Shown piece after piece: positions 1 to 62,905 of a stretch of 64,000 bases of DNA. The notes under the pieces were generated by a model. The model was not told the DNA's origin. It made no database searches and worked only from the letters and a program-made list of their open reading frames with translations. Position numbers and translations under genes: made by a program. Source of the DNA: Convolutriloba macropyga (Eukaryota). Where the stretch lies: the NCBI RefSeq assembly GCF_964194025.1, contig NC_134472.1, positions 59,892,001 through 59,956,000 of the forward strand, given 5' to 3'. The first letter of the stretch is position 1; each line of letters starts with the position of its first letter.

Positions 1-3000
1 AATGACAGTCCAAATCTAACCCAAAATTTTTAGTGCTCTATTAAAGGACTTGTGGTCAATCTGTCTATCTTTTTTTTTGTCTTTTCAATTGTATGGAAGG
101 CCACAATCGTCACTTGCGGCTAATTTCCAGCAATCTGTCTGCTATTTTTCGAAATTTTCATCTGTTTAACTTTTCCTTACTTTCAATCATAGAACCTAAA
201 AAAGGATTGATGACAGCTTATGTAGTGGGTTAGGTTCTAAATGTTCTAAACAAAATACGGAAATTAAAAACGCAAAAAGCACAGAAGTTGATAACTTAGA
301 AAATTAAAAATATAAAGATATATGTTATTTTTCGTAAGGTGACTCAAGTTTTTTCTTCCAAGTGTAAGAGCTGATGGGATGCTTCGGCCTAAAATTATTT
401 GAAAATAAAGTTCAGTTTTCCAAATTGGCAACTGGAATTTTCTATCAATTTCCCAAAGTGATGAGTAGAACACAAATATTGAAAATTTTATCTGTTGATC
501 CTTTGAGGTCCTTTCTGTTCCGTTAAGGTCTACCAATTTGCAAACATAACAGCCGTTGGAGCTGTTTTTGACACCTCCATCCCAAAGAGAAAAGAAATAA
601 ACATTGAAATTAAGAAAAAAATTATAAATTCTTTTTGCATGTGGTTAAATTTTTTTGATGTAAATATGTATGTAACAAGAAGGCTCGGTAACGTGCGTTC
701 TCAGTTCTCACATAATGTTCTGGAATCGCTCTTCCACATTTTTGGCCTAAATGTCTACCAAATGAGGAACAGACAGACAACTTTTTTCAAAGATTCAGTT
801 TTGTTCAAAAACAATTGGGGAAAAATAAAAAGAAACCGCTTCAAAAAAATAACTTAGTAAAGGGAACAATGTCACAATCGAGTGCCAACAAAACCTGCTT
901 TTTTCAAGCCTACAAGACAAGACAAAACAAAAAAAAACAAAATCAAATTATAGCAACAATTAATATTTACATCCAAAACTCAATGTCTATTACTTTGGAG
1001 AGAAAAATACTTAATAACAACAAAATAGAGAAAATAGAGTTAAAAAGAATGAAAACTAAAAAAAAAGTTTTTACTCCATCTGAAAAAACATTGGACCAGT
1101 CAATGTTCATAGGCTAAATTGTAAGACATTAAAAAGAAAAAAAATTTTTTTGCTAAAAAATGAGATTAAAGATTTATAAACATTTGTTTATTCGATGATA
1201 GCAATCATTATCGGCTATACAATTTTAAATCCAAAGGAAAGTTTGCCTGTGTGACAAAATTTTCAGTGTTTTTGAGAATGTTTCTGGTTTTTTGAGTGTT
1301 TCGAGAGAAAGTTGTTGTTTAAATTAGTAGGATACAACTATCACTTTCTCTTAGAATGATTTCTTTAAGGAAGTTGTGTAATATTGGCCAAACAAAGCAA
1401 ACTTCTTCAACGTTATACAGATTATTATTATCTAGCAACGCGCCAATTTAAGATTTAGTTGCATTCGCTCGTTTATTGGAAGTCTGTTGTTAAGTGTACA
1501 AACATTGCAAATCCAAAAATAGAGTGCGTTGATTTAAGCTATTGAACAATAACTATAATCTACTGCTCAATGTTTTATTTTTATTTTTTTTACAATAAAC
1601 CATTTTCACCTATAATGTTTCGACGTCAGTGAGGTATTTGAGTACTTGGCAATCTGATAAATTATCCTTAACAATTATTTGTTTGTCTCTTAATATTTTT
1701 TCTATACACTTTTTGCTAAGAAATTTTGCTAATTTTTTAATTGAAGTGTATTTTTATGCAAATTTACACGTATCCTAGTAAGGAAGATCGGATATATCGC
1801 TGATCAGCGAAAGAAAAGGTTGAATATCATAAAATAACAGCGAAAGTTACGTTTATTTAGGAAAATTGCACAAACATATTCTGACAATTCTGTCAAATTT
1901 GCCGTTTCGGTAGTTAAGTTTTTTTAACAAAACACTGTGTTTTTATTAGTATACTAACACAAAACAGGCGATGCTGGTTGCCAAAATGTCGTGATTGTCA
2001 AATTCACGTTAGTTTTTTGTCAGTTTGTTCGGATATTTAGTCAAACTTGATAACTATTACCCTTTTTTTGCCAAATTTTTGCGAAAAACATTGGTAAAAT
2101 GTGACAAGTCTTTTATGGAAAAGGGTGTTTTTGGATAAAACAGGGCAAAATTGGAATATTTTGGGTCAATTTTAACATTTTTTTTCACAATTCTGGGCCA
2201 ATTTGTCAAAAATTTGGGTCAAACCTAGCAATTTGTGGTCCAAACTGTTTCGATTATGGGTTAAATAGCATAAATTGGGGCTGAACTTTACTAAACTCAG
2301 TCAGTTATGGGTTATCTGTAGGTGAATTTTGGTCTAAGAACACAAAATTTTCAAAAAGTGTGGATCAAACTTGAAATATTATGTCATAAATGGATAATTA
2401 TAGGGCCAAAGGGTCTAAAATTGGGTTATTATAGGTAAAATGCGATAAAAATGAAATTTTTAAGGCTAAATACGATGAAATTGACAACCATAGAGAAAAT
2501 TTGGACTTATTTTAGTCAAATCAAGCTAAATGTGGGTCCAAATTTACAAAATAGGGGACCAAATGTGGGACCAGTTCAGTTATAAGGACAAAACTGGGAT
2601 GAATTTATGTGGCACTATTTTAACACCAAAAGTCGCCATAATATTTGAAAATTATAAGAAAAACTTGAAATTTTTATATTTATTCTGGATAATCTCAGAA
2701 AAAAAGAATGTACATTTGGCTGATGTTTGCAAGAATTCCCACTAATCCCTGTAACTTAAGCAAACAGTAGACAAAATCTGGATGGAAAACTTTTAGAACA
2801 CAAACCTGCAAAATTTCAGGAATTCATGGGATAAATTTAGGCTTTATAGTAATTATTGGGACGTTTGGTCAACAATACAACGCTATTCGTAGCTATCAGA
2901 GTGTGGTATTAATTTTTAGAGACACCAATAGGTACACTATACAAGTATTACGTAGGAATAATGTTAAACTAGACTCCTTTGCATGTGGGTCAGTTTGCAG

Positions 3001-4669
3001 TTGCAGAACTAAGGGATTCGAAGATGATAAGATGACTAAATTAGCTGATAAATTAAAATTTAAGAGGTTTAAGACACGCTAAAAAAGTTGAGAACAACAA
3101 TAGAGAGTCAAATTTTTGAATATGAGTGTATGGTTTCGCATATAGGACTAAACGGATAGTAAAGTACGTTATGTTGACAGCATTGAAGATTTGATTAAAT
3201 TGAACACAATTATTTGTTCTTAAAGTAAGAAAAATGCTGTCGGTCGTGTCTTATTGTTTAGGAGGGAGAGAGGAGGTACAAAGACGCTTTTTTGATACAG
3301 AATGAGTTGCTTACACGTGCACTTAAAAAACCGTACCAAAGTTCCAAAAATTGGGTCAGAGAACCAAAGAACCGTTGGGCGAATTTACTAACGAGTAGAC
3401 TGTTTTTTTAGGGAGAACCCGTCTCCAATGTTTGGGCGAAATTGGAAAGTTCAGAGTCTTAGAACATCTTGCACAGGCTTTGGGATAAGGGGTATGTGTA
3501 AACTCTGTTTATAGAACCTGTGTGATAGCGGGGTAAAGAGCCTGCGTTACCTTTGGTTTTTGTATGGAAAACTAGCCACAAAAAAATCAAAAAGTCCACC
3601 AGCTCCTTAATTTTTGGTGCCTAATCGACGCTCTTTTTTCCTCGTCGCACCAGTTTTAAAATACTGATGTGGTGGAGATCTAATTTGCTTGATCTCAATT
3701 GAACCACACTAGTTCAGGCTACCTTCATTATGTATAAGAGTACGTATATTCGCTCACAATGTATTATTCTAATTGCCAAACCTACGTGTGATGTTCTAAG
3801 AATAAATTGAATAAGTAAAAAGAATTTTTATGAACCAGATTGAAATGATAGAGCACGAAATGGGGTATTTGCTAGGTTGAAAATATGCTGAGCAGTCTAA
3901 TCTTAATCAAGTAATTCATTCCATCTTACTTCTGGATGTGGATATTATTCCAAGTTTTTGGTTGTTAGAAATTCGGCACACTAAAAATTGCTGCAAAGCA
4001 TTCCCGCTCAGCGGAGTAGAAGAGTATTTGATCTTAGAACAGAGAGGGATAGAAAAACTGAAGTGCAAAGCAAACGTCTTAAATTGCGCTGGTTGTGTCG
4101 AAGAAATGACTTGCTTCAGTAGCAAGGTCTAGGCTCGTACGTGTTTAAACTTCAGTCAACACGACTACTAATCACGAAGTTTATGACTTGCTCCGAACTA
4201 TTTCGAAGGTCATTCGTGGAGCTGATTAGTTTTCCGCTTTTTGTCATACTTTTGTTTCAGACTTGCTGCTGTGAAGAGCGTACTGGATAGCTTCAATATC
4301 CTTCAGTTACTACGCATAATAATAGCAGCAGCGAATCAACCGCCAAAGCAGAAGCAATATTTTATAAAGAAAAAACCAGCAAATTTGGCTATGAATGATA
4401 CATTCTTTTGCTCCACACAATTTCAACATTGTAACTGGCTTTTATGTTCTAGTCAGTTTGGACTAAGTCTAAAGTGCTCACAAAGTTGACGAGTTATATT
4501 TCTAAAGATTCTGTACTATCGTTAATTGTGGCGGTAATTATCCAATTAGCAATACTACAACTGGCACTGTCCTGGTTGTTTGGAATAGGATTATTGCTTT
4601 TAGACACTAAATGGCAGATTTTTTGAGTGGCGAGAGTCAAAAGAAGTTGAAGTTGTTGTTGTAAAGGGG

Positions 4670-5096
4670 TGTGGTACATCAATCAATTATGTGCTAAACC
4701 TTCACCTGCTATTAACCTTCACCTATCAGATATGATATAATCATGTCTTCTTTACTTCACAGAATGAAACTTTACCTCCTTCTGAAAGGATTTTGTTCAA
4801 TTTTTTCACATCGCCCACTTTCCCCACTTTCACTTAATTTCATTCTCATAACAATAGTCGAATTAAATTGTTCCTCTAACCCTTTAGTTTCGAGTCTAAA
4901 GTAATTGACAAGTGGAAACTCAACAGTTTTCCAATCTAGATTCTAAAAGTGTAATCGCATTAGATTCCCATCTCTAATAAGATAATCATATAATTCAAGC
5001 CTTAACTTCGAATAAGGATTTGTACCGAGAATCCACCTCACTTAATTCAGAAAACTTTAGAAATTCAATTGCTGACCTATCTACCAAGATATCACA
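4670..5096 (+). repeat. 5' LTR of Gypsy-type element
   Basis: TGTGGTACATCAATC...GATATCACA, directly repeated (diverged) at 9075-9483. Followed by PBS TGGCGGAGTCAGC. Confidence 0.88.
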
Positions 5097-6300
5097 TGGC
5101 GGAGTCAGCACCTATAGAATGCGCTCTACTCGGAATTGAACTTTTTTGGGAACAACCCAACTTGGAACCTCCACTACGATGGTAGAGATGAAGAATTATT
5201 CTAAAAGTGGCAATTTTAGCTAACGAACGAATCTCGATAGATATCCTACGCGAGGTACCTCACTAAAAGGTAACACCACCCCCCACTACATCCCGATCTA
5301 TGAGGAAGACGTCCACAAAAGCACTAATCAAAGTCAAGGTGTTAGTAGAATCAGAAGCGAACAATTAAAGAATTTATAGTTCAGCAAATGTCAAAGGACT
5401 GAGGCTACGGGAATTCTATGTGGTCACAGACCTTTTGGTACTCTGTGACAGCAAAGCCGTCGCCCTTACTTGTCTCATCTTAGGCACGGAAGGAAGATTT
5501 TTGGTTAAAAAGGACCTAAGGTTCAGATAGACCAAATAACAACAAAAGGCTTGTGGGACATCCCAACGTCTTTTTAAAACAAAAAAAAATAATTTTGGAC
5601 CGTTGCATTTTTCTGACGAGAAAACAACTCCAAATTGTGACCCTGGCAGCCATGAAGAATTGATTATTCGAGATGCATTTTTTGCAAATATGCTAGATGG
5701 AGAAATCCAACGCAAACTCCTGAAAGAAACACGAAAACTGAAAAATTGCTAGAGCTAACATTCAATGTAGAGATGGCTATACAAAAACACCTTGAAATTT
5801 CCGGAACTCCTGCATACGCAGTATCAATCCCAATCACCAATCCCTCAATTAACAACAATCAAAATCCTGGAACATTCCCAGGACAAATACAGACAACTTT
5901 AAACCATCTCTCTGCCCAAACTTCGGTTACACGTGGTCTGCTTTTCATCGTCAATACTGCCCACCACGAGTCAATAGTGAACACCACGAGGAAAAAACTG
6001 TTTTATATCTAATCATTTTGCAAAGGTTCGCTGTATACGGAAGAACTCTATAAAATCAAAACCCAGAGTAAATAACCTAGAAAATATAACGTCTCAAGCT
6101 GCCACAATTGTGACATCTTCGACAGTACACCAGCAAGTTAACCAAATAGACAATTTGCAAAATAGGCATAATCTTTGCGTATCTAACTAGGACTCTGACT
6201 ACAATGAACTCGAAGACAATTCCGTAGCAGTCTTCACAAACAACAGAATCTAAGACAAGTAGAACCAGTCAATGCGCAAGTACATTTGGGCAACAAGTAC
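5096..6300 (+). pseudogene. gag: gag remnant of Gypsy-type element
   Basis: MAESAPIECALLGIELFWEQPNLEPPLRW* is homologous to the gag start at 53170 (-). RDAFFANMLDGEIQRKLLKET motif; many stops and frameshifts. Confidence 0.75.
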
Positions 6301-8420
6301 CCTTCGACTTTAACATTGAACTCATACCAGGTGGCAAAAGGGGAGAGGTAGATTACATTTTCCGCCAACCAAATCAAAAAGGGAAAGTTACAAACAAATA
6401 TGATGAGGAATTATTGGTTGCAACAGAGACCTGCATTCTTGACACGATTGCAGCAATTTATTTTTATTCAGCACCGCCAATCTCTCAATCACATCACATT
6501 AAAGCAATAAATGCTGCACATTCCACATGTGCCACTAATACTCAGCAAATAAACCATTCCATATTCCTTTTTACCTTAAACTCTAGTACACTTAATTGAT
6601 TCAAACTCGATTTGCAAACATAGTAGAATTCTACTCCTCTAACCCAATAGAAATGAGTAACCCAATGGCATCACTACAAACTCCCTCCACAAATCCAGTA
6701 CGAGTAACATTCCATTCTACTCCCAATTCAGAAGAAGTACAACCCGATCGTTCAATGAAGGACCAACAAGCCCAATTTAGAACTGTCGAAAAAATAGGTT
6801 TTCGAAAACAATTTAACATAACTCTTCACTAAAAGATTCCTAGCAGCACTTATCAATAGGGACGCCGACCTCCAAAATGTTCGAGACTCTATATTACAGA
6901 ACGACAAACAGAGATATAAGGATGTTAATCCTAATATGCACTCATACTGGCGCGATCTCCACGTCTGGTTGGGGTGTGTTTTTGTGGACGAACCAGGAGC
7001 AATTTCCAGTTCAATTCAAGACCCGGTACTGGAAAGACTCCAGCGTACCCACCCCGGGATGTGGCGCATGATCTCGCCCGCAGACTACGCATTTTTGGCC
7101 CTTCATGTCCAATCCTCAGAAAATTGGCAAAGTCCAAACCTTGTACCGATGTAGGTAAGAACCTCAAACCAGTTTTTCCTGCATCAAAGTGGAAACCTCA
7201 CAAAAATTGTTCTGAACAAAATGAAGAAAACCAGATTGATTTTGGCGGACCAATTGCAAATGAAAAACATCCAGGCCTTGCATGTATCGACCTCTTCTTA
7301 AAAAACCCAACAGTAGATTTAATTGATAAAACAAATGAACTCAACGTAGTAAAGTTGTTAGATGAATATATTCACAGCCTTTGGGTTCCACATATTATTC
7401 GTTTAGATCAAGCAATATTTCTAATGATTAGTAGAACGATTGCTTCAAATTATCATAAACGCTTATGTTGTATGAAATTAGCAAGTACAAATAACAGAAT
7501 TACAAAAAAAGAATCAATAAAGTCGATAGTTTAACAATTAAACATATGTAATCATAAGGCAACAAATGTAACACCTTACTAAGCACATTTTGGCAGAAAA
7601 CCGAACACCCACTTTGAAATATAAGTAGGTTTCCAAATTCAACAAATTTGACATAGGAACAATTACTGAATCACTATCTAGACGCTGACACTGTCCCAAT
7701 TGAAGATGATTTGGACAATAACGCATGGAATTCGGGTGAGCGAAGTAATCTCCTGATTGATGAAACAATGAACAAAACCGAAACTGATGATGGTTGACGA
7801 TACAACGGCGACTAAAACAAATCAATGTCACGATTCACCTTTCCCCCGAAACTGACGAGCCCCATTCCTTGACCCAAAAGTCATTAGAACTTCAGCTAGC
7901 CCAGAAGGTGACAACACGGTCGAAGAAGGACTTTCGCGTACTTTGGGACACCCTTGAACCAGGAAGCACAGTTCTTCGTACTTCTCTCACTACGACTGTA
8001 ATCCAAGGGCCTTGAGTTCCGAAAGTTCGTGTTTGCAAAATTGACATTGGCGATATCGGTACCAAAGACGAACGTAATACACCTCTTTGGAAATACGCAC
8101 AGCGTCGACCTCTTCCGTAAGAGAAAACTACCGAAGAGAAAATTGCGCAACATTCCAAGGAATTGAAAAGGAAATATCAAGGGGGTATAAAAAAGTCAGA
8201 CATCGACATAATGACAATCCTTCTGGCGTTTCCTCAACAAATAGTAACTTCTCTAAATCTATGACAGCACGTATGCCGACAAAACAACAACCAGTTAACA
8301 GTCGAGGGAGAGTTACTACAACTCCCAATGCATCTACTGCTACTTCAACCTAAACGCCATCGACATCAACAAGTAAACGAAACAGACGGGCACCAGTCTA
8401 TTATGGCTTCAAACATTCGG
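6301..8420 (+). pseudogene. pol: pol remnant: RNase H C-terminus plus integrase
   Basis: PFDFNIELIPGGKRGEVDYIFR (RNase H end). HPGMW...KPC zinc-finger remnant, QIDFGGP...CID...IRLDQA and LVERL (DDE core), TPY*AHFGRKP. Confidence 0.85.
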
Positions 8421-9483: not shown

Positions 9484-10339
9484 AGGTTTTTAAAGTGATT
9501 AAATCAATGTTCGAGGGTGACTTTAGTGAAAACAACCCAATTCAATTTGAACTGTAGTTCAATTTGCGATTTTAAACTCTTTTACGAGATTAAATATTGC
9601 CCACTTAGTTTATTGAAGTTAACACAATTTTCATGCGCATGAACTACGCTCGTGTTGTTTTTTAATTACATAAACTTTTATAAGGTACTATCAAATTTAC
9701 GTTTTAAATTCTTCAGCCAAAATGTTGAGGAGATTTCTCGTGATATCTAAAGACAGATAGCAAGTATAATTACAAATCCCGTCCCGTTGGAGAGCAAAAT
9801 TTGCTTAGGGTCAGACGGCTGGTAATTAAGCGGATGGAACATTTTAAAGACAATATCAAGTTCTCGCCCAACGAGAGCCATGACCAACTGATAAAAATGA
9901 GTGGAGTCTTAACACTTTGCGTTAACTCACATTACCCAGCCTCCATGTTAGCTTCAAATATTTTTGTCCCAAAGATTGTCTCTACCCCCTCATTATTTTT
10001 TTTCAATGCTATTTTGAGGAATATATTGAAACCGCAAATGAAAAATCACGATTTATACTCTCGATTGCTCGATTCACGATAGCTTTTTTGCTAAACTTGA
10101 TTGTAAAAAAAATATCCGAACACGTCATTTGTTATTCGTTAGTTATAATTTAACAATCTCAAAATAAATACTACTTGGCGTGCAATCATTTATAACCATC
10201 AAAATATAATGCTGTCTGTACAATAATTGAAGTTCGTGTTTTGATGTGACCGTCTTTTACCGTAGTCAGTTTTAGTCGAAAGCGGACTAGGAATGAAGCA
10301 TCCCGCAGTTGGGGCTTTGACCTTCAGTAATTATCAGAA

Positions 10340-10386
10340 TCAGACTGATGAAGTAACATTCGACGGTCCATCTTCATTGTTGTCAT
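10340..10386 (-). CDS. Gene A exon 7 (terminal coding exon)
   Basis: Acceptor TATTTCAG|, reads (D)DNNEDGPSNVTSSV*. Phase 1 matches exon 6. Confidence 0.72.
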
Positions 10387-10742
10387 CTGAAATATGAGTT
10401 TAAGCCTCAATCAAGTTGAAATATAAAATAAACTACTGATTAAAAATTAATTCAGTCTCTTGTTTGAAAGTTAAGATGAGGAGAATATTGCTGTCGCGAC
10501 AAAAAAAATCTCATGTCTCCTCCTGCAGTTCATCAAATCTTTTTAAATGGAGAAAATGAACTATGAATTAGTTTTGGATAAAGTTTCTGAGAGGATTAGT
10601 TTTACGCTTCTCACAAATCCCGGATGTAAATTCATGGGCGACACGTAAGATGTGTTATAAAATCAATGATATCAGAATTATCTTCCTATCTGAAATTGAG
10701 GGAAATTGTTCGATTACAATAAAATGGGTTTGAACAACTAAC

Positions 10743-11218
10743 CTCTTGTGGTTTGCTGATTGTCTTCAATGTCATTTTCGTCTCTTCCGGTCCTTGTAGT
10801 AGACGAGTCAGGCGGCGTAAGTTCGACTCTGAGTTTGGACCGCTTGTTTTTGCATCGTGAAAATTCCATCATTTCCACTTCATCCTCTGCTGTTCTTTCG
10901 GCAGGTCGAACAGAAGTCATGGCATCGTAGTCAATGTCGCAGTACTGATGTGATGTCGTCCCAGAATCACTCCGATCCAAAACATGATACATCGGCTGAT
11001 CATCGTTAAACCCAGCAATGCTTACAGTCCCAGCTCTATGGGTTATTGGCCTTATTGTCCTCTTGTTCTCGCGGGTTGAATTGTGCGCTGCTCTCTCGTT
11101 GCCTAGGTTCTGGTTCTCAGCAGTGGGGTACGGGATGAAGAGAGGGTGTGGGTAGTGGACCAGTGCGTCAGGATTCGCAACCTGGTGGTCCTGTCTGCGG
11201 ATGTTACGCTTTTTCGAT
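10743..11218 (-). CDS. Gene A exon 6 (cytoplasmic tail)
   Basis: Acceptor CTTTTTAAG|, 476 nt open, GC-richer than flanks. Begins with basic stop-transfer SKKRNIRR and contains PMYHVL...QYCDIDYDAM. Donor G|GTTAGT. Phase 2 to 1. Confidence 0.85.
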
Positions 11219-14200
11219 CTTAAAAAGTTTTCTTATAAAAAATTTGAGATATGTATATTGGAGTGGGGGGGGGGGGGGGGGGGGCAATTTCAAAAAAAGT
11301 TTGTTGCCATTAGGCGATAACCAATTAAAACGCTTAAAGACGGTACCCCAAAATCCACTTGAAGTTATAACTTTATACGACAGTAGTCAAATGTCCCTAA
11401 CAATTGTTCTTACGTCAAAATGATTTTTAGCATAGTGTACTATCAAGTACGTAGTATCCTTTAGTGTGTTAATTGGTTTTTGCCCAACGTACACAACACT
11501 TAGGTTGAAAGTTTTCTCCCAGTGGTCACAAAATTTATTATCGCCTAATCGAGTTTTCGCCTAATATCACATCCCCCAAAATTTTGTTTTTTTAAGCAGT
11601 AAATTTCATCGGCCCTCAATTCAGTCTGGACGAAATCAATAACACAAACTGGCTGTCTGCAATTTTCGAAATGTTTCCTCCAGCTGTGAGATTTCATCAC
11701 TAAATTTGATACAGGATTTCATAAGTACCTAACAGCTTTGAAAATTAGGGATTCGAAAGAGAAAAGTGGCTTAAATACAGATGCCATCTACTAGCAGGAG
11801 TGTGGATACAGTATTATTGTGAATCTAAGAAATTTAACTCCCACGAAAAAAAGCCCGGTGTGTGGTTCTAATGTTAGATTCGGCTGTGATAGTTCGTATG
11901 AAGTTCCACAGACCACTAAAGCATTGTCATGGACCGCGAGTCATGGCGTTCTTTTCCAAAACTATTCAATTATTTTGTATAATTGGGAAAACTATTGTTT
12001 GATTTGGTTAACCGATTCGTATACCTTCCGCTCAATTTTCAAAAACCTCTGGTTCCATTAATTTGTTCCTATTTTTTCATTCAGTAGAAAATTAGAAGAT
12101 AAACATTGTTTTGTCAATCTTTAACTTTAAATCTGTCTCTTTCATTTTTCAGTTTTTTCAGTACTTTTTTTGAAAATGCTCAAATTGTTTTTATCGAAGA
12201 GAAAAAGTTATACTTGTTGAAAAAACCAACGATATGTATTAGAACAAGGAGGCTCAGTAATGCTCCGACGCCACCCATCCACATTTAAAGAGGTAATGAA
12301 TACTGGTGTGAATAACATTACAAGGTTCTACAAACAACAAATTAAAAGAAAACAAAAATAAATAGGGTAAAAACTCAAAATCCAATTACATATATTCCAA
12401 AACATATAATAACAAAGTCGAAATAACATGAAAAAAGAACCAAAAAACAGTTATATTGAACGACAAACAAATTGAACTCATACACAGTGGGACAAGATAA
12501 CCAGTCAACAATCAGAAAATACGGGGCGAAGATCAAAAATCCACCGAGTATTTTAAGCCAAAAACTTTGAAATGTCATAAAAATCATTATTAACGTGACA
12601 ATTCTAAACAGATTCAGTAATAGGTCTTTATAAAATTAGTAGGTGTGTGAGAATAAGTGGTAGAAAAAGACTGCGGAATAACCACAGATTAACAAGAGAA
12701 AAAATTATAATTAACGTACGAAAACACAAAATAATGAAGCTGTTGAAATTATCAGCTATAATGTTAAAATTTTGCATAGTGATTCGATGTTCACTTGTGT
12801 CTCATTTGGAAAACAATGAGACTTGTTTTAAACACGAATATTTTGAAGGACAACATAAAAACAATAAAAAATTGATCAATAGCAAAAAAGGCATGCGGTA
12901 CAAGTTATAAAACATCAATTGCAACCTAAGACCAACAAAAGGATTGAAGTTTAAAGCAAAAAAGTAAATGGGACCTCTCATTGAAGACACCAAGTTTCAA
13001 AATGACAAAAAAAAATGAAAATCAAAACTCAAAAAATTCAAAAAAAATCTGATTTTCTCTAAATCGAAAAAGATCAAAATCATCAAAACCATTTGCTTTC
13101 ATCTTATGGCCTTGAACAAACTCAATAAATCTCTACAGATAAGCAAATGATATCTGTTATTAATTAGAAACTTCGGTAGGACTACATAAAGAAAAACAAT
13201 TAAAGGAAAAACTGGATAAAAAATTGCGAGAGATTGTTCAGAGTTATTAGTGAAAAATGTCAATCTTTGGAAACTTTGGGAAAAAATGAATTGACGCAAT
13301 TCATATCCAATGAGATTTATCACTAATCAGAATAAATCCCCTGATTACAAAAAACAAAGCAAATACACGCAAAAATCGAGTAGTCAAACAAAAACTTCAA
13401 GAAGAGATTCTCGAAGCTTTGAAGCCATAGAAAAAACTATTCGCTGATAAGTTTTAATATTCAGCTCAAACTTTTTTCAACACCAATGGGAACTTTATTT
13501 TTTGTGATAACTTGATAAATTATCAAAAAAGAACCAAAGTTTCGAAAAAAAATCAAAAGTGAAAAACAATTATAAGAACTTATAACGTTAAAAACGTAAA
13601 ACAATTAGAAATAGGAAAAACCGCTGACCAGTTTAGTTGTTCTTTCAACTTTGGGCTTATGGTGCCTTGCAATAGTGCGACCGACCAACAAAATTACAGA
13701 AATGAGTTATTTTCAAAAAAAAAGATTTTCAAAAATCGTGTAAGGTTTATTGAAAAAAAAGATTCAGAGACTTATAAACATTAGGTATGCATTCAAAGCA
13801 ATAGAAAAAATGACGAAATCTGCTTTGAGAAACCAGTGGCATTTTTTCAACGATACTAAGTCTTAGGACTACAAAACTGCCACAAATGCAGTCAAAACAC
13901 AAAAATTCACTAAAAAGTAGGAAAAGGATTTTTTGAAGCCATCAAAACCATGAGCGATGGCTCCTCGGAACAAAACTATTGTCCATTGTGCCTCATCGGA
14001 TAATATATGGGTTTATTTAATAATGGAACCTTGAAGTGTAAAGTGATTTGTCTCTGAATAACATCAGGAAAAACAAAAACATGAAAAAAATGGAAAAATC
14101 AGCTCTCAATATATATTTTGAATCTTTTGGATTGTAAACTTACTAATGAAACCACAACTAGCATTTTTTTGGCTGCTCGTTTTTAAGGAACAGCAAATTA

Positions 14201-14562
14201 TTCCAAATTTTATCCATCAAATTTTTATCTAAAAACCAAATTTTATTCAACTTTTTGATACAAAAAAATCTGAAATTGATTAAAAAGGACGCTAAAATTG
14301 AATAAAATCACGCCCATTGTGAACTTTTCACTAAAACTTTACACCTTGATAACTCTTCGAAAAAAAGAACTTCAAAGAATCTTTATAACTTCAAATTCTA
14401 TGCTGGAAGAGCTTTCTAGTGTTAGCACTCTCGATTCTTTACGATAATTATGTCGATCGGCCAAAATTGACTGAACAAAAAAAAACAATTTGAGTATATT
14501 GTTCCACCTCCACTATGTGTGTCTGAACAAATATACATCATACGTTTTAAAACTACACATAC

Positions 14563-14690
14563 TTGATGCATTTGAGAGCCGCGAATGTGATGCCAGCGAC
14601 GAAGAGAGCCAACAATAGGAGGAAAGTCGCAGTCATCGTGATAGCAGTCCAATTTTTGACAAACCAGTTGGCATTCGTTTCAGTTTGGCC
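14563..14690 (-). CDS. Gene A exon 5 (transmembrane exon)
   Basis: Acceptor CTTTTCAG|, reads GQTETNANWFVKNWTAITMTATFLLLLALFVAGITFAALKCI(K), donor AA|GTATGT. Phase 0 to 2. This frame is not the one listed in the ORF track. Confidence 0.88.
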
Positions 14691-15206
14691 CTGAAAAGAT
14701 AATTCTCTGCCGCCTGTTGTCATCCGCGGCAACAGTGGTGAAAAATTCGAAATTATTTAGAAGTCAGTTAGCCCGATTGAACAAACCAGGCCATAGTCGC
14801 TTTAAAGTTGAACTGCTTAAGACGTGGTTATCTTTAGCTTAGGTAAACTGGCGAATTACTTCTCGTGAACTGGTCCAGAAATTAACCCTTTTAATTCAAT
14901 GGAATCACTCTCGCTACTTTCTCATGTTTTTGCTCCCGGATATTTCCCGTCAGTGATCTGCAGCTCATACAATTAGACAATTTCAAGCAGAATCCATTGT
15001 AACAAGTATTATGTCGAAATAATCGCATCTCGTGCTACAGTGGATTTAACTTGAAATCGGAACCAAAATAAAAAAAGGCACCAGAAAACTTTACAAACAT
15101 TATTAAAAAATTAGAGTCTGCGTTAATTACAGTTAACTTTAAACACGATTTCTCGAAACTATTGTTAGTATGGAAGTATGGTTTGTAAGTATGGATTACA
15201 AAGTAC

Positions 15207-15487
15207 CGATGCATTGTTTGAAGATCCTCCATTGTTGCTTGTCAATATGTTCCCTCGAGATTTATTGCCAAGCACTTGTCCATTCACAGGGACAGTAACA
15301 GGGGACTCAATCACCATCTCCGGTTTATAGGGTACCCTCTTAACTGAAACTAGTTCACACCTCCCCCTCCTTTTGATCTCAGGGGTGTCCAGCAGGTGAA
15401 GATATTGATAGCCCGGGTACTCTATTGGATTCTCTCCTTTCTCTGGTTTCAACGGAATCATCTGCAAACTGATGAACACCGTACCAC
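15207..15487 (-). CDS. Gene A exon 4 (conserved ectodomain segment plus stalk)
   Basis: Acceptor CATTTAG| (alternative in-frame acceptor 12 nt upstream, start 15499). Reads GTVFISLQMIPLKPEKGENPIEYPG...CELVSVKRVP...SSNNAS, donor |GTACTT. Homologous to the gene B exon at 62622-62905. Confidence 0.85.
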
Positions 15488-15554
15488 CTAAATGTGAATC
15501 TAAAATGTGGTTAAAAAAATTAGAACCAAACATATGAACGGTTTCTTACGTATC

Positions 15555-16290
15555 TTCGGGGCACTAATCAGACTATAGAAGATCAAAGTGATATCTTATT
15601 TATGACTATAGCTTTTGTCCCCTTGAAACCTTGTGTTCGCTGTATGTGTGCTCAGAGTTATAGATAAGATCCAAGGGAACTAAGACCAGTTCCAAACCAG
15701 ACCAATGTCAGTATTCGTTTTGTCCCAGATCACTTCCAGATCATTCAGAGGACGTCTGTACACTCCAAACTGCCTCTGATGAGCAACTCTTATGACAAAA
15801 GTCTATGATCATACCATTTTCATAAGATAGAGGTCCATGGTTTTTCCAGACTGTTGTCCAGATATTTGTTTGAGCGCTTCGAACGGCCTCTAGTCAAAAT
15901 TTTCTCAGACCAAGTGTTGTTTAAGAGAATTTAATTAAGTTAAAAAAAGTTGTTTTAACCCGAATTTTGTTTATTCTACTTTTAGAAATAGATAATTTTA
16001 TTGGATCAAAAAGACCGGTGACGAGACCCTAATCAATATGCGTCGGATAATCCACTAATCAGGCCATCCCCAGAAGGAAGTGATCTCTGATCAAGCTATT
16101 TTGCTCTCAAAATTGACCCTGGATGTAACCATGACATCTGATTAGACCATACCAAACAGAAGTAATCTCTGATCAGACCAAATCAAAGCAATGAACAAAT
16201 TCTTGTGCTGTGGAAATAATCTCCAGTGCCTTTAATTTTTATCGGGAAACACATCGTTTGTCCTTGACTTGGGTCTGATCAGAGGGCGTC
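15555..16290. repeat. Decayed repeat with TCTGATCAGA motifs in gene A intron 3
   Basis: Recurrent (C)TCTGATCAGA / CAGATCA motifs; boundaries approximate. Confidence 0.4.
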
Positions 16291-16721
16291 TTTTTAACAA
16301 TAGTGCGTTTCTCATTTTAAGAATGCAAAATGATTTGGAACATAGGTTTGATATCATCAATCATGAAAATAGGCTATCAAAAATTTGATGCACATCAAAG
16401 CTCAAAGCATAGAGTGCTCTGTTTATTAACTGAATAAAACTTATTATGGACTATAAATCAGCATTTGCTTACGTTTACCATGTACCATATGTACCATGTA
16501 CCATTATAGATGTATTATTGTTATATGTATCGAATAATATAGCGGTTTAATTTTTTGTAAAACAAATTGTTGAATCACGCACATGTTTTAGTCTGTTTAG
16601 ACAAAGTATTTTTATTAGACAGTTCTACACAACATTTTTATAAAAATTTGTTCATGGTCGGAGAGAAAACTAATGTAAGTGAGAATGCAATTGTTCAAAA
16701 ACAACAGAAGAATAAACTTAC

Positions 16722-16927
16722 CTGGTGAAATAGAGTTTATTTTCTTTCCAAGAGGCATACACATCAACAGATCTCCCAAAGGGTTCGAGTCGCGAGTAAC
16801 AGGACCTGTGAGGGGGTTACTGAACATGAAAGTGGTTCTAGTTGTGTCCTGAACTCCTGACCTCGCGTCCTCTTTTCGAGCGTGAAACTCAAATCCATGC
16901 AGGTCGTCCATTTTTTCGCCCACTGGC
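16722..16927 (-). CDS. Gene A exon 3
   Basis: Acceptor TGTTTAG|, reads PVGEKMDDLHGFEFH...LLMCMPLGKKINSISP, donor G|GTAAGT. Phase 2 to 1. Confidence 0.85.
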
Positions 16928-17651
16928 CTAAACATTGAGATTTGTGCTATAATGGGAAAGACTGAAATTTACTGTATCTCCATCGTGTTAATGTCATATA
17001 TCAAACACATTTACAGAGGATAACTAGAATTATTTTTATTGTATATCCAGACAATGATTGCATATAAGTGTTCGGAATTTTCGGATACTCGTAACTAAAA
17101 TTCCTTTAAAAAGTTTGGTATAGAAAACTTTACGATACCAAACTTTTCAGAAATTTTGATATATAAGCTTCTGAAGGTTCGAACCAATATCATCCAATGA
17201 GACTGTGGATATTCCCCCCAAATCTGGTTCCGAATCGAGCAACCTGTTTTCGATGTGTTGTCCTCATTTTTTTCCAATTTTTACGGGCTGATGAATTAGA
17301 ATAAATTTGCTGAAAAACTATTTACTGTATTACCTATGATTCAGCCATAGTAACATTGTAAATAATACACAGCGAACTTCGTTAATTTCACTAGACGACG
17401 TATATTTGCAAAATGATGAAGACATCGCCGAGAACTTGTTCAAACTTGCTCACAGCTGCATATTGAAGAACTAAAAGAACCGGATGAATGACACCGATGA
17501 GTTACCTGTCACCAAATAAGAGGGGAAAATATTGCAAAAGCTATTCATTTGTCTCGCCTAAAAAACAGGCGAAACACAGGAGACCTCGAGAAAGGACGAT
17601 GATTGGGAGTGAGAATATAAAAGAAATTGGGATCGAGTCATTGACACTCAC

Positions 17652-17784
17652 GGTGAGGCAATTCCATGAACACAGAGCATGTCCCTCTTCCTGTCAAATG
17701 AGAGGGAGTTGTCGAGGAAGTGGACTCTTGGAGCAGATGCGTCATATTTACTCAGTTCGTCACGACATGCGTCCGATGCAAACT
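17652..17784 (-). CDS. Gene A exon 2
   Basis: Acceptor TGTTTCAG|, reads (K)FASDACRDELSKYDASAPRVHFLDNSLSFDRKRDMLCVHGIAS(P), donor CC|GTGAGT. Phase 1 to 2. Confidence 0.85.
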
Positions 17785-18427
17785 CTGAAACAGTTCTCCT
17801 AACATTTTGAAATTGCTTCCTGAATTTTGAGAATGAGTAAAAATATTCAAATATGCTTTTCATTTTTTATCTTTAATCAATCTTTGTCTTTTATTCAGTC
17901 TCCTGTTTATTATGGCTCCTGTTTTTGTCAAATTATTTGCGATAATTTAAATGACAGAATTATTTACAGCATTAAAAGACTGATGGCTGATTAACACCTC
18001 TCATATCTATGCTTGTGGCAAAATCTAGCATCTAACAAATCTCTTTATTCATTTAATAACAAATTCCGAAAACGTGAAAAAAAAGTGAAAAATATGCAAC
18101 AACAATCAAGGCTCTCTACTAAGAAGTCAGAAAGTAAAAATTTGAAAAATTTATACTTCTGTCTCATTTCTCACACAAAACAAAAGTTGCTTTTTGCTTC
18201 ACACAACTAAATCTTGAAAAAAACTTTGCTAATTGAACCTGTACCCTCCTTTCCTTATGTCTAGAATGGTGTCATCTCAAGCATATGCTACAAAAAAAAA
18301 ATTTTGATTCCAACTTAAATCCAAAAGTTCTTTTTTGTACGTAATCTACTTTCAATTTTATAGTCATTAAGCATAAAAATATTTGTATATCTCTTGTGTA
18401 TGAAAACATAAGGAGATCTTAGCTTAC

Positions 18428-18563
18428 TCGCACAGCATTTTCGTTTGTAGAAACATTCCCCATCCGAGGTCTCAATCTCGTTCATGCATCTCAGGTCCAG
18501 ACCCTTGGCCAATCCAAAGAAAACTACCAGAAACGCAGATATGGAACTGATTCTGATTCTCAT
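18428..18563 (-). CDS. Gene A exon 1 (ATG, signal peptide, Cys-rich start)
   Basis: MRIRISSISAFLVVFFGLAKG|LDLRCMNEIETSDGECFYKRKCCA: basic N-terminus, hydrophobic core, A-K-G cleavage-like site. Donor A|GTAAGC (phase 1). Confidence 0.85.
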
Positions 18564-18875
18564 CGTCGAACGTTGAAACGCACTAAAAACTATGAACAAG
18601 TTTTATTCAAAGCTAACTTGATATCTTCTTAATTTATCTCAAAATGGATTGCTGATATAGAAAAAACTTTTATTGATAATTTTGATCATGTACACATAAT
18701 GTCGACAGTGGCTTGCAACATCAACATGGAATATTCCGTCGACATCGACTAATGCGTGCTCGTAAAAAACCGACTTTTTTGTTATTTAGCAGCAAACAGC
18801 TAATAACACGCCACAGTGACTTAATATGCGCATAAAAACTGCTTACTATTTTACATACCACAGCGGCTACCTTGA

Positions 18876-31849: not shown

Positions 31850-32491
31850 TAAAATCATGGGATATACCTTAGAATTAGAGTGAGCAAACGCACGCGGGTC
31901 AGGAACAGCTCACATTAGACAGTAGATTTTCTATCGGGGGAGGTACATAAGACTAAGATAGGCTGAGTTGGGGCATCAAAAATAAGCTACACCACTAGAT
32001 AACCATCCCCCCTCAGTTCAATTAAGTTGATTAACTTAAATTTACTGACAGGTTGATTAACCTGGGTCCCGGAACAAGAGTTATCTAGTGGGGGAACAAA
32101 TATATGCCAAGTGTTTTTTTAGTCATTTTTTTTTTGAAAACCAAGGACGGCGAAACCGTCACACTAGGTAGCATTAATCGTCCCCTCTGCGGTTCTTAGA
32201 ATAAGTGTAACGTTTTTTGTGTTTTGCGGTTGTGTTATTGGCCGGGGACAGATAGTGGGGATCTTTTTGTGGTTTTCTTTGTTTACATTTAGCAACAATC
32301 ATCCGCATCAAAGACACCCAAACCAAAGACCGACACAGCAAAAACAAAGACACAGCAAAAACCAACACAGCAAAGACAAAGACACAGTAAAGAACAACAG
32401 AGCAAAGGCAAAGAGACAGCAAAAATAAAGCAACTAATTAATCACCAAAGCCACAGACAAAAGACAAAGCACCAAACAAAAGTCTTCAACA

Positions 32492-35400
32492 ATGACAGAC
32501 AACCTCGAGAGATTGAAAAAGTCAAGAACAGCCCACCGCACCGTTGCAACCAGATTAAACAACGAAGCCAAAACAATTACTGATAGACCTGGACAAAATG
32601 TCAGTGAAGAGGAGCTCAAACGACTGGAACAAAGCTCGACATTGTTGACAAAAAACAGTTGTACCTGTCAGACATGAATCAGAAAGTTCAAAACTTGATC
32701 GATGACACCGACCGACTCGACGAAGAAATCGAAGAATCGGAAGATTTCGACGACAAGATAGGACAACATGTTGACCTAATCAACCACTTTGTCATGTACA
32801 AAAAAACCCCAGCCAGAACTTCAACATCACGATTAGCAACTGGACCACCGTCCATCGCCATCGTGAAGCTGCCGAAGCTGGAATTGCCAAATTTTTGCGG
32901 AGACTACAAGGATTGGACGTCTTTCTTCAATGGAGCAGTGACAAGCAACAGCCAGATAACAGACAGTCAAAAGTTGCAGTATCTGAAAACATCAGTGAAA
33001 GGAGACGCCGCAAAGCTTTTGACCTCTCTCCAAATCACAGAAGCAAACTTCAGTACAGCATGCAACATCCTGAGGAACAGATACGACAACAAATGTCTTA
33101 TTCTACGAGCCCATGTTCATGCAATAGTTTCACAGAAGCCGGTAACAAATGAAAACCCAAAGGCACTTCGAGATCTCATGTAGACAATAGAAGAATACAG
33201 AATAGCGCTCTGCAATCTTGGACGGCCCGTGGACAATCAGGACATCTTTTTCGTGGCCCTGATTGCAGAGAAATTGCCCGCCGAAACGAGAAAATGTTGG
33301 GAACTTTCAACTACAGGAAAAAATCCCCAAAGCTATCTTGATATGAAAAACTTCATGGAAGAAAGAACACGCGCCATTGAAGCAGTCACACAGCAGTCAG
33401 CAACAGCCATCGACAAGAAGCCCACAAGCAGCCCACAACTTCGAAGATTCCATTCACATATAGCCACATCAGCGACTAAAACGTGTGAATGTTGCGACGA
33501 AAACCACAAAATTTATCAATGCCAAAGTTTCAAAGCACTTTCAGTACAGGACCGAGCTCAGTTGATCAAGACAAAAGGACTTTGCTTCAATTGCCTCCGC
33601 CCTGAACATCAAAACGAAAAATACAATTGTTCAACTTGTAAGAAATGCAAACGAAAGCAAAACAGTCTTTTGCATTTGGAAGCCAATAACAAATCGAGGA
33701 CAGCTTCAACAGCGCCAACGATTACAACTAGCAGCACGTCACCACAAGAAGCAAGCAATCAAGCAGCAAAAACAGTCAACAAAAACAAAGAAAAATTTGC
33801 AGCCGCAGCACAGTCGCAGAATGAAGAAGAAGAAGAAGAAGAAGTATTTCTTCCCACCGCAATCGTTTCGGTGGACAACAACGAAAAAACAACTGATATT
33901 AGAGCAATTTTAGAATCAGGATCCCAAAGCAACCTCATCGCGGAAGATGCAGTACAACGCCTTGGATTGAAAAAAGAAAAAGCCGACGGCCAAGTTTTTG
34001 GACTCGGAGCTCAAGAAGTCAACAACAGCTAAGGATCAGTAAACTTGATTCTGAAAACGAAGGACGAAGACTTCATCAACATCAGAGCAACCGTCTTAGG
34101 CAAATTGACCAGCATTCTGCCTTCACATCATGTGAATGTCAGCGGTTGGACAAAACTTCAGAACCTCAGTCTTGCGGACCCAAACTTCAATCAGCCATCC
34201 ACCGTTGACTTGATAATTGGAGCAGGACACTATGAAGAACTGATGATTGGAGACAACAGAATCAAGGAACCTCAAAAGCCAATTACCTACCGCCTATCTT
34301 GTTTTGTTTGGCTCGTGATCGGACGTGAGAGTCAACTTGAAAAGAAGAGTACTCAACTTCAGTTTTTCGTTTGTTCAGAACCAGACAATTTACAGCAATT
34401 CTGGGAAATTGAAGAAATTCCGAAAACAACACAGTGGACATCAGAATAGAAATGCGAAGATCACTTCAAAAGTACCAAACGACGCAACTCAGAGGGAAGA
34501 TTTGTTGTGAAACTCCCTTTCAAAGAAGACTCCAAACCCCTGGGTGACTCGTACCATTAAGCGAAAAGAAGACTACGAAGCCTCATCTTCCGACTGGAGA
34601 AACAACCTGATGTATACAACAGATATAGTCAGTTATTCAGGAATTCATTCAACTTGGACACATGGTAGAAGTTCCCAGAAATAAAATTCATATGCCTTCC
34701 ACAAACTGTTTCTACTTGCCACATCATTGTGTCATCAAGGACGCCAGCAGCACAACTAAAGTCAGAGTCGTATTTGATGCTTCAGCTAGGTCAACCGGTG
34801 GAGTATCTTTAAACGACCGTCTCTTGGTTGAAAATCAACTTCAAAAGGATCTGTTTGGAATTCTGTTTCGTTTTCGGTTCCATCAAGTAGCACTATTTGC
34901 CGACATTGCCAAGATGTACCGACAAGTTCAGCTTGACGATGAAGACAAGGATTTTCACAGGGTTTTGTGGAAAAATCCAAATGACACAGAGGTGAAAAGA
35001 TACAGAATGACAAGGGTGACCTATGGAATAGCATCATCTTCCTACCACTCAATTAGACCTCTCAAAGCCTTAGCAGACAGTTGCACCAACAGCCATCTCC
35101 GCCTTGCAATCAATAACGACATGTATGTGGACGATTTGCTAAAAGGAGCCTCAGATGTTGAGCACGCCGCTCAATTACAGGACGAAATCATCGCAACACT
35201 GAAAACAGCTTGTTTTGATAAACGAAAATGGACATCAAGTCTTTCGTCACTTGCTGAGCGATTGCCTTCCAGTTTTTGCGAAACTTCAGACGAAATGATA
35301 ATCAACAGCAACGACTACGCAGTTAAAACCCTTGGAATAAATTAGAGCCCTGTTCCAGATCATTTCACGTTCACAGTTTGCCTGGACAAGAATTTTTCTA

Positions 35401-38400: not shown

Positions 38401-38547
38401 CTTGATCGTATAATACAGACATTCGACGGTAATGACAACATTGTTCGTGTTGTTCAAGTGAAAACACAAACTGGAGTTTACATCAGAACAGTCAGTCGCC
38501 TCATACCCCTTCATCGAGAAGAATCAAAAGATCGTGGAGCAGAATAA
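32492..38547 (+). pseudogene. BEL/Pao gag-pol polyprotein (gag, Zn knuckles, protease, RT, RNase H, integrase) with stops and frameshifts
   Basis: KLPKLELPNFCGD (BEL gag), CECCDENH..C and CFNCL..EH knuckles, ILESGSQ protease, YLPHHCV/VVFDAS/MYVDDL RT, LHVFCDAS RNase H, IRVGGRL/GDLP/MWEAAVKSMK/WKKWSVEYL integrase. Confidence 0.95.
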
Positions 38548-38781
38548 AGGATCAAACTTTGAGAGACACGCGAAGATTTTCAATTGTTTTGATCACACCT
38601 TCGACAATATCTACAGAATCAGTTTTGTATGAAATTGATAACATTTCTGACAATTTTCACAAAAACCAAGTTGTCAGTTTCAACAAAATCATCTTCTTTG
38701 TATCCTCAACTGTACTCGCAAGATAATAATAAAGGAAGCCCACAGATGTCACAATTGAACGAGTTCAAGGAGGCCGGGAAA

Positions 38782-53593: not shown

Positions 53594-53880
53594 CTGAGCA
53601 ATCTCCACAATCTATCTGCTTCAGTTAGAATTCTCGTCCCGAGAAAAAAGACTGACTGTCTTCCAAAATAAACCTTTCCCGGTAATATCTGTCTCTGTTG
53701 GTCAAATTCTCTCATTATCCTTCGTTCCACAACACTTGTAATCTCGCTCCGACTATCGTAACGTGTTCCTTGACTTGCTCTGCGTCAAAAGTTGCCGGCT
53801 TTAAACACTTGTTTCAAGTTACCCGGAACTCTCTTTACACTCGTATTCAAATTTTCTGATTAACTCCCTTTTTAGCAAGA

Positions 53881-59582: not shown

Positions 59583-59698
59583 CTGGATTTTATAAAGAGA
59601 ATTATTATCACGAGACATATGGTGACAACAGCAGTCAAGAAAACGGAAGTAAGCAGTTCAAAAGTCGTCCACATGTTCCCTGTGTCCAAATCATCCGG
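59583..59698 (-). CDS. Gene B transmembrane exon
   Basis: Acceptor ATTTTTTAG|, reads PDDLDTGNMWTTFELLTSVFLTAVVTICLVIIILFIKS(R), donor AG|GTTAGA. Phase 0 to 2 as in gene A exon 5. Confidence 0.82.
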
Positions 59699-62621: not shown

Positions 62622-62905
62622 TTTAAATGAGGAAGTGGGCTGCTCTGCCTGTGGAAACACCTCATCCACACTGTTCCCAACATCATCAATATCAACAGGT
62701 TCGATGTACTGCTCAACCACATCATCATAATTCTGAGTTTCTTCACAAGTGTGCGGCTTTCTTTTGATGGAAACTAATTTGCAGCCACTTTTCTCGATCT
62801 CAATTGTGTCTAGATCGCACAGCATAGGTGATCCGGGGTACCTCACTGCGGGGAAACCATCGTGTGGTCTAAGTGGGATCAACTCAAGAACTGATATGAA
62901 CGCCT
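62622..62905 (-). CDS. Gene B exon homologous to gene A exon 4 (upstream exons presumably outside the window)
   Basis: Acceptor ATGTTTCAG|, reads AFISVLELIPLRPHDGFPAVRYPGSPMLCDLDTIEIEKSGCKLVSIKRKP...TSSFK, donor |GTGAGA. 284 nt, phase 1 to 0 as in gene A. About 25/52 identities with gene A. Confidence 0.88.

Follow-up and report, generated by a model that had tools for sequence, protein, structure and literature searches.

In animal evolution, the place of acoels is both key and debated. In the stretch of DNA analyzed here (the window, 64,000 nt of the acoel Convolutriloba macropyga, contig NC_134472.1, positions 59,892,001 to 59,956,000 of the forward strand), the minus strand between window positions 18563 and 10340 raises the question of whether a series of exons forms a real gene and, if it does, what kind of membrane protein this gene encodes.

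The splice was rebuilt from the minus-strand sequence between 18563 and 10340 and gave seven exons with GT..AG at all borders and all joined in phase. The product has 468 aa when the exon 4 acceptor at 15487 is used and 472 aa with the acceptor at 15499, 12 nt upstream. The model of the initial annotation, seven exons spliced in phase to 468 aa, was rebuilt identically, and it equals letter for letter P0001 (XP_075246726.1, isoform X2 of the RefSeq gene LOC142340139 of C. macropyga). The 472-aa product is P0007 (XP_075246725.1, isoform X1 of LOC142340139), and the CDS span given by NCBI for this gene (8224 nt) is equal to 10340-18563. The gene is thus already catalogued, RefSeq listing LOC142340139 with both isoforms as uncharacterized, and its novelty as an undiscovered gene falls away. 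The description of the gene as invisible to the open-reading-frame track is loosely true, with the exception of exon 6, which is an open frame of 164 codons. A literature search for the LOC142340139 locus id found no mention.

Exon 1 (18428..18563, minus strand, as are all exons given here; start codon 18563-18561) carries the predicted signal peptide and a first Cys-rich stretch (C26, C37, C43 and C44). An AG stands 21 nt before the ATG and would be a candidate site for a spliced leader. Its sequence is the same as the N-terminal start of P0001 and P0007, and a homologous piece, DLACLKNQIESSKAVCFFENGCC, was found in the locus L001. Exon 2 (17652..17784) is entered in phase 1 and left in phase 2 and contains a FASDxCRxEL ... 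LCxxG block, and exon 3 (16722..16927), phase 2 in and phase 1 out, contains a beta-rich core with the LLMCM motif. The best-conserved block (MIPLKP ... YPG ... GRCELVSVKRVP) lies in exon 4 (15207..15499) together with an N/G/S-rich stalk; of the two acceptors of this exon, 15487 (468 aa) was seen in RNA and 15499 (472 aa) is that of RefSeq X1. Exon 5 (14563..14690), which has RNA joints at both ends, encodes the NWT sequon and the transmembrane (TM) helix. The cytoplasmic tail is encoded by exon 6 (10743..11218), in which a basic stop-transfer stretch is accompanied by a Pro-rich segment (HYPHPLFIPYP), YHVL-x11-YCDI and YDAM. The coding part of exon 7 (10340..10386) ends with ...DDNNEDGPSNVTSSV and the stop codon 10342-10340, and the 3' UTR extends below 10340. 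Eight variants were found in exon 6 in DNA runs, five synonymous and three non-synonymous.

The RNA evidence consists of contigs of one poly(A) RNA run (X5) from whole animals, and expression is known from that library only; X5 agrees with the poly(A) RNA-seq of whole animals that PMC13650328 describes. Contigs of X5 contained the joints 10386>10743 (exons 6-7), 11218>14563 (exons 5-6) and 14689/90>15206/7 (exons 4-5), exactly as the initial annotation had predicted them, and a contig end left exon 4 at 15487-15489 (the X2 acceptor) and continued with exon 3 letters from 16724. For junctions 1-2 and 2-3, the basis is the RefSeq model together with the exon borders conserved in relatives. The depth in X5 was about 100-300 over the exons versus 0-2 in the introns, and 177 in 10200-10399 (the side of exon 7 and the 3' UTR), where contig depth is, by the warning of the tool, a poor measure of expression. 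None of the splice joints was present in the DNA runs X1, X3 and X6. Retroelements are abundant in the window, which would suit a locus that is no functional host gene, whether a splice model arising by chance, a pseudogene or an envelope-like gene derived from a transposon. The exact junctions in spliced poly(A) RNA bring this explanation close to refutation, and the intact frame, the intron positions conserved in other assemblies, the absence of retroelement domains from the protein and the absence of any further gene called within 10 kb of LOC142340139 also argue against it. LOC142340139 is a real, spliced and polyadenylated gene of this acoel.

Protein features were called by hydropathy and motif counts, and the database entries P0001 and P0007 were used as queries in the full-length analyses. 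The hydrophobic N-terminus covers residues 1-19, and the ectodomain holds eight Cys (26, 37, 43, 44, 52, 83, 146 and 202) and the sequons NKS233, NAS250 and NWT265. A single TM (residues ~266-292) is followed by KSKKRNIRR (positive-inside) and a polar cytoplasmic tail of 173 aa. By sequence, the product has all features expected of its class (signal peptide, one TM, positive-inside flank and sequons on the outside), and its topology is solidly predicted as that of a type I single-pass membrane glycoprotein. The signal peptide, the eight ectodomain Cys with the three sequons and the single TM with a long tail had been noticed before and were all recovered; the claim of no catalytic domain agrees with the Pfam search on the full protein, which gave no enzyme domain.

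Neither the single exons nor the full protein (E up to 1) matched Pfam, except for a sub-threshold Ctr match at the TM helix. NCBIfam gave no match to the protein, and a PDB sequence search with the family profile returned 0 matches at E up to 10. When the full protein, the region of the ectodomain and the family profile of exon 4 were used as queries in word-indexed searches, nothing was recovered beyond the protein itself and known fragments, and no full-length homolog. An exhaustive phmmer search, performed with exon 4 alone as the query, found four fragments of the family and a bacterial protein with Ig repeats (P0006); the latter was treated as spurious, its match falling in the stalk/repeat region. 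As the searches of Pfam, NCBIfam and PDB sequences gave no match and no full-length homolog was found, the statement of the initial annotation that the family was not recognised stands. Its term lineage-specific fits the presence of relatives in a few unannotated assemblies, within the limits set by the database content and by an exhaustive search with exon 4 only.

The only relatives found were a paralog, which lies inside the window at a distance of 44 kb, and fragments at the level of exons, which came from two ENA assemblies and a marine catalogue. The paralog and the fragments have in common exons 1-4, the intron phases, the cysteines and a downstream TM exon. L001 and L003-L005 had exons 1-4 in colinear order (34-49% identity), with equal intron phases and conserved Cys; exon 2 homologs in L001, L003, L004 and L005 had 38-48% identity and an equal donor phase, exon 3 homologs had 34-37% identity and equal borders, and WT(T/A)-TM exons were located downstream in L003, L004, L005 and the paralog. 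The exon-4-like exon of the paralog (62622..62905, minus strand) showed 50% identity to residues 167-219 with equal intron phases, and retains both of the two family Cys that LOC142340139 has lost as a pair. The TM exon of the paralog (59583..59698, minus strand) reads …NMWTTFELLTSVFLTAVVTICLVIIILFIKS, and its upstream exons fall past the window end. Acidic ORFs that recur at 51.1 kb and at 54.2 kb were considered as tail exons of the paralog and rejected, as they lie inside a repeat complex with flanking direct repeats of 86-87%. No conserved tail exons were detected by tblastx of the relatives' loci against the paralog region, and a BLASTP comparison of the tail with the putative L003 and L005 tail exons, which have no RNA support, gave no significant similarity. 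LOC142340139 belongs to a small, fast-evolving family that preserves the ectodomain/TM architecture and the positions of its introns while the tails diverge. The family is new and of a familiar kind; orphan membrane proteins of this sort are common.

For the ectodomain fold, AF2 on the single sequence was unusable (pLDDT 39), and AF2 with a shallow fragment alignment gave an all-beta core (pLDDT 54.9, pTM 0.51). All fold searches with this weak model (pLDDT 55) returned Ig/FN3-type sandwiches, a fold of two sheets with seven to nine strands, with Foldseek E of at least 0.007, TM below 0.5 and VIA Z of at most 7.1, where a best Z of 7-8 is, according to the tool, typical of unmatched models. 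The nearest language-model features were all of class I/II cytokine receptors (0.78-0.80, a range also reached by shuffled proteins), and VIA gave Z of 5.5-6.3 for IL-23R, IL-31R, IL-12Rβ, OSMR and LIFR, with GH2 and Brr2 sandwiches equal or better. By this model, the ectodomain may be a generic Ig/FN3-like beta-sandwich, with matches at background level. These features, the recurrence of cytokine receptor domains and IL-17RB D1 in the structure matches (Z 5.5-7.0) and the Pro-rich stretch directly inside the membrane would suit a protein that truly belongs, in highly diverged form, to the FN3-based cytokine-receptor or IL-17-receptor lineages. However, we regard such an origin as improbable: the scores are within the range of shuffled proteins and are reached or exceeded by the GH2 and Brr2 sandwiches, the model holds one sandwich and not two, WSXWS is absent from the sequence, fn3, IL6Ra-bind and SEFIR are absent in Pfam even at E of 1, and the PDB profile search was empty.

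The motifs of the cytoplasmic tail were chosen post hoc, after inspection of the sequence. The ITAM pattern YxxL/I-x(6-12)-YxxL/I is satisfied by YHVLDRSDSGTTSHQYCDI, and such a pattern occurred in 0.44% of 20,000 tail shuffles. The protein end ...T-S-S-V is a putative class I PDZ-type C-terminus (S/T-x-Φ-COOH; 2.3% by chance in shuffles), and the junction that creates it, 10386>10743, is present in RNA. Among the relatives, the putative tails did not conserve the tail motifs, the ITAM-like one included. YxxΦ motifs double as sorting signals.

Considering these results, the product is most likely a receptor or adhesion molecule of the cell surface, non-catalytic and with a type I layout (probability about 0.6). 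A cleaved signal peptide and a Cys-rich cap would be followed by one disulfide-braced Ig/FN3-like sandwich of ~150 residues, and then by a glycosylated N/G/S-rich stalk, one TM helix and a disordered tail of ~173 aa without an enzyme domain. The beta-sandwich would bind a partner outside the cell, and the tail may act via short motifs, namely the tandem YxxL/I pair, YxxM, the membrane-proximal Pro-rich stretch and the -S-S-V PDZ-type end. Location at the surface, binding of a ligand and the signalling through adaptors that the initial annotation proposed are, like the fold class, inferred. The topology would fit equally a membrane glycoprotein for sorting, endocytosis or structure and not for signalling, in which YHVL, YCDI and YDAM would be adaptor-protein sorting signals and the ectodomain would have a role in adhesion, the glycocalyx or granules. 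A tail unconserved among relatives is expected where only loose motifs matter, and the X5 contig depth is fairly high in whole-animal RNA, though depth measures expression poorly. We hold this second explanation to be possible and rather doubtful; against it, shuffled tails seldom combine the spacing of the YxxL/I pair with a PDZ-type end. No result of the analysis separates the two roles. Very improbable is a special form of the receptor reading, an acoel-specific recognition receptor system in which a private beta-sandwich would be coupled to an ITAM-like/PDZ tail for the recognition of microbes or algal symbionts or for phagocytosis. Nothing in this analysis supports a link of LOC142340139 to immunity or symbiosis.

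Acoels have been reported to be without the conserved, canonical pathways of immune signalling, and many of the genes with which they respond to pathogens are uncharacterised or restricted to acoels (PMC12849515); nothing on LOC142340139 was found in the supplements of that study. For acoel immunity, a clustered family of receptor-like surface proteins with verified expression makes a reasonable candidate, and LOC142340139 is one among very many unnamed single-pass membrane proteins of a newly annotated genome.

Compared with known systems, the predicted protein resembles class I cytokine receptors (IL-7Rα, IL-31R, the common β chain and fly Domeless) in its type I single-pass layout, a putative sandwich with paired cysteines, the lack of a kinase domain and a tail in which tyrosine motifs accompany a Pro-rich stretch close to the membrane; these receptors are also nearest by language-model features and present in the structure matches, at chance-level scores. 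It differs from them in having one predicted sandwich without WSXWS and only two Trp (NANWFVKNWT), and in matching neither fn3 nor IL6Ra-bind in Pfam and showing no similarity at the level of sequence. With IL-17 receptors it may share a first domain that is FN3-like, rich in Cys and extended at the N-terminus, as in IL-17RB D1, where VIA gave Z 7.0 across 112 residues including the N-terminal cap, with 4% identity and below the level that the tool takes as meaningful; unlike these receptors, its tail has no SEFIR (Pfam, full-length protein). The acidic residues followed by YHVL-x11-YCDI match the loose ITAM consensus of non-catalytic receptors (Draper/MEGF10-type and FcRγ/DAP12-type), whereas the ectodomain is unrelated to theirs and the motif is not shared by the putative tails of the relatives. 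Taxon-restricted single-pass membrane families of invertebrates are a description and not a family, and predict no function. LOC142340139 is like them in its small clustered family, an ectodomain conserved within the lineage only, fast-evolving tails, no Pfam domain and the annotation 'uncharacterized protein'.

The studied gene lies on the minus strand (18563 to 10340) of AT-rich animal DNA (GC 30-43%). It has seven coding blocks, which join in phase at canonical GT..AG sites: exon 1 (18563-18428), exon 2 (17784-17652), exon 3 (16927-16722), exon 4 (15487-15207, alternative acceptor 15499), exon 5 (14690-14563), exon 6 (11218-10743) and exon 7 (10386-10340). The two exon-4 acceptors are in frame and 12 nt apart, giving products of 468 aa and 472 aa (without or with DSHL). 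With exon 4 as query, exhaustive phmmer searching recovered a 468-aa protein (P0001) of 100% identity. This is XP_075246726.1, 'uncharacterized protein LOC142340139 isoform X2 [Convolutriloba macropyga]', and its database sequence is the same as our own splice of the genomic exons. Isoform X1 (P0007, XP_075246725.1, 472 aa) was in the same cluster. The NCBI CDS of LOC142340139 spans 8224 nt on chromosome OZ077303.1, the exact length of 10340-18563, and no other called gene lies within 10 kb on either side in the NCBI annotation. Since both the RefSeq protein and the CDS span match, the seven-exon, in-phase, 468-aa model of the initial annotation was correct down to each residue, and RefSeq already lists the gene, though as an unnamed model. 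A polypyrimidine-AG (gtttttag/TGCG; 18564-18590, minus strand) precedes the start codon by 21 nt and is a possible acceptor for trans-splicing.

Six sequencing runs of one study contain the studied DNA. In five of them the contigs total 0.64-1.14 Gb and include introns; the poly(A) RNA run X5 is from a different sample and has 80 Mb of contigs. Three samples are found among the runs, in agreement with the species' genome note (PMC13650328), where three specimens went into HiFi, Hi-C and poly(A) RNA-seq of the whole organism. X5 contains 96% of exon-6 words and was compared with three DNA-type runs (X1, X3 and X6) across 10200-16199, where its depth was about 100-310 in exon-containing bins versus 0-2 in introns. 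Among these four runs, the joints 10386>10743 (356 nt skipped, CT..AC), 11218>14563 (3344 nt skipped, CT..AC) and 14689>15206 (with the cut at +1, 14690>15207) were present in X5 alone, and exons 6, 5 and 4 were all on one 384-nt X5 contig. Another X5 contig fits to 15489 and then reads GGTGAAATAGAGTTT..., the plus strand from 16724; once two shared letters are discounted, the contig crosses from exon 4 (15487) to exon 3 (16722) as spliced in the 468-aa isoform. Acceptor 15487 is the one used in the RNA contig, while the 15499 form is known from RefSeq only. Junctions 3-4, 4-5, 5-6 and 6-7 are seen in RNA contigs; junctions 1-2 and 2-3 are predicted from the RefSeq model and conservation in relatives. 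The gene, its splicing and its expression are established.

Several repeats were observed in and around the gene. In intron 5, contig words summed to a depth of about 30,000-300,000 in DNA runs over a stretch of ~45 nt at 14454-14499 (…GACTGAACAAAAAAAAACAATTTGAGTATAT…), versus 2-60 around it, and the stretch was found in the RNA run too. Contigs break there and continue in many different ways, and its 26-mer is single copy within the window; it resembles one end of a short repeat present in very many copies. The same intron has ~20 G in a row at 11264-11285, and the contigs of all runs seem to be cut at 11253-11299. In DNA runs the 11400-11599 bin had some 5-10 times the depth of its neighbours, and is therefore a moderately repeated element. 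Farther away, a decayed LTR-type retroelement (32300-38700, plus strand) gave aspartyl protease, reverse transcriptase and integrase zinc-finger matches, with open frames split over several frames. A repeat complex at 48000-57800 is bounded in an LTR-like arrangement by direct repeats (48000-48700 and 57125-57790, 86-87% identity, about 9.1 kb apart) and contains 3.25-kb, 1.85-kb and 0.95-kb duplications (91-97% identity), which include two minus-strand copies of an acidic ORF (51069-51380 and 54213-54629) with no Pfam match.

In the feature scan, every descriptive point made earlier about the protein held. Residues 1-19 are hydrophobic, with cleavage placed near residue 21 in the initial annotation; the ectodomain has eight Cys (26, 37, 43, 44, 52, 83, 146, 202), and an N/G/S-rich stalk carries the sequons NKS233, NAS250 and NWT265. 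One strong hydrophobic segment at about 266-292 is followed by KSKKRNIRR, and the membrane topology is established. The tail (173 aa) is polar, with a net charge of -6, five tyrosines and the C-terminal end -T-S-S-V. Reading away from the membrane, it contains a Pro-rich HYPHPLFIPYP, YHVL-x11-YCDI fitting a loose ITAM pattern, YDAM, and SSV as a class I PDZ-type end. In 20,000 tail shuffles the ITAM-like pattern arose in 0.44%, the PDZ-type end in 2.3% and YxxM in 11%, figures that are only indicative because the motifs were chosen after the sequence was seen. Eight within-species differences from the window were found in exon 6 among DNA-run variant contigs, five synonymous and three non-synonymous (D379E, H355Y, A339T), a ratio mildly suggestive of constraint on the tail.

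Relatives were found both within the window and elsewhere. Using tblastn, a second exon-4-like exon, 50% identical, was located on the same strand at 62905-62622, with a matching TM exon at 59698-59583 and the same intron phases; these belong to a paralog with its 5' exons past the end of the window. Four further matches of the exhaustive exon-4 search were short fragments from ORF calls: two ENA assemblies supplied P0002, P0003 and P0004, and P0005 came from a marine eukaryote catalogue. Of the contigs that carry these fragments, L001, L003, L004 and L005 have colinear homologs of exon 2 (38-48% identity), exon 3 (34-37%) and exon 4 (43-49%), and exon 1 was found in L001 alone; their donor and acceptor phases match those of the studied gene, and a downstream exon encodes WT(T/A)-TM. 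FASDxCRxEL, LCxxG, LLMCM, MIPL(K/R)P, YPG and GCxLxS(V/I)xRxP are conserved in the family alignments (A1, A2). Two further Cys (LC.LD and PHxC), present in all relatives, are both missing from the studied protein, the pattern that would be expected of a lost disulfide pair. No relative of comparable length was found using the full protein, ectodomain or exon-4 profile. In L003 and L004/L005 the TM exons are followed by putative tail exons; these lack RNA support, are polar and tyrosine-bearing, and have no significant similarity to the studied tail. There is good support for placing the gene in a small, clustered family restricted to its lineage, with the ectodomain conserved and the tails diverging freely. 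In L002, one of two near-identical ENA contigs carrying P0003, a retroelement with integrase-bearing ORFs (1000-6900) takes the place of exons 2 and 3 seen in L003, and this copy is probably disrupted.

The family had gone unrecognised in the initial annotation, and the searches agree: Pfam (individual exons and full protein) and NCBIfam gave no match, and the family profile matched no PDB sequence at E up to 10. AF2 gave an unusable model of the ectodomain by itself (pLDDT 39); with the 15-row exon-fragment alignment A2 (pLDDT 54.9, pTM 0.51) it predicted an all-beta core at about ectodomain residues 43-190, preceded by a poorly modelled Cys-rich N-terminal cap and followed by a disordered stalk. 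Foldseek against PDB gave nothing at E 0.001 or better, its top rows being CsgC, FN3 domains, cytokine receptor domains and C2/arrestin sandwiches; AFDB clusters and Swiss-Prot gave E 0.007 or worse with TM < 0.3 by query, and ESM Atlas by shape gave TM 0.36-0.41 (IL-7Rα, GH2 sandwich, common β chain). The best VIA-align scores were Z 7.1 (GH2 Ig-like domain), 7.0 (IL-17RB D1) and 6.7 (Brr2 Sec63 FN3-like), on a scale where unmatched models typically get to 7-8; many cytokine receptor FN3 domains scored 5.5-6.3, and Z 8 was reached by no chain in either the wide search or the second look. The model is fairly read as a two-sheet sandwich of Ig/FN3 type and unassigned family.

The RNA joints together with the conserved introns exclude a spurious or transposon-derived gene. 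True cytokine-receptor membership could be considered, since language-model features place the ectodomain nearest to vertebrate class I/II cytokine receptors (0.78-0.80), but a third of shuffled proteins score as high, and the defining features fail: the protein has a single domain, no WSXWS and no profile match. IL-17-receptor membership fails likewise, with no SEFIR and no profile match. As to function, the initial annotation proposed a surface receptor or adhesion molecule signalling through adaptors. The topology is established and the single-pass architecture fits; for the function itself we infer, as the most economical reading of the architecture, that the protein would serve at the surface as a receptor or adhesion molecule without catalytic activity, acting via short tail motifs. 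A role in sorting, or a structural one, is also compatible with these facts.

In a 2026 study, conserved immune signalling pathways are reported missing in acoels, and half of the few Vibrio-responsive genes in C. macropyga are reported to be uncharacterised or acoel-specific (PMC12849515). LOC142340139 is named neither in the text of that study's supplements nor in the literature found, so a tie to immunity or symbiosis is only a possibility. The gene is for now of modest interest. It represents, as was correctly spotted from the sequence, a family not described before, though its kind of protein is well known.
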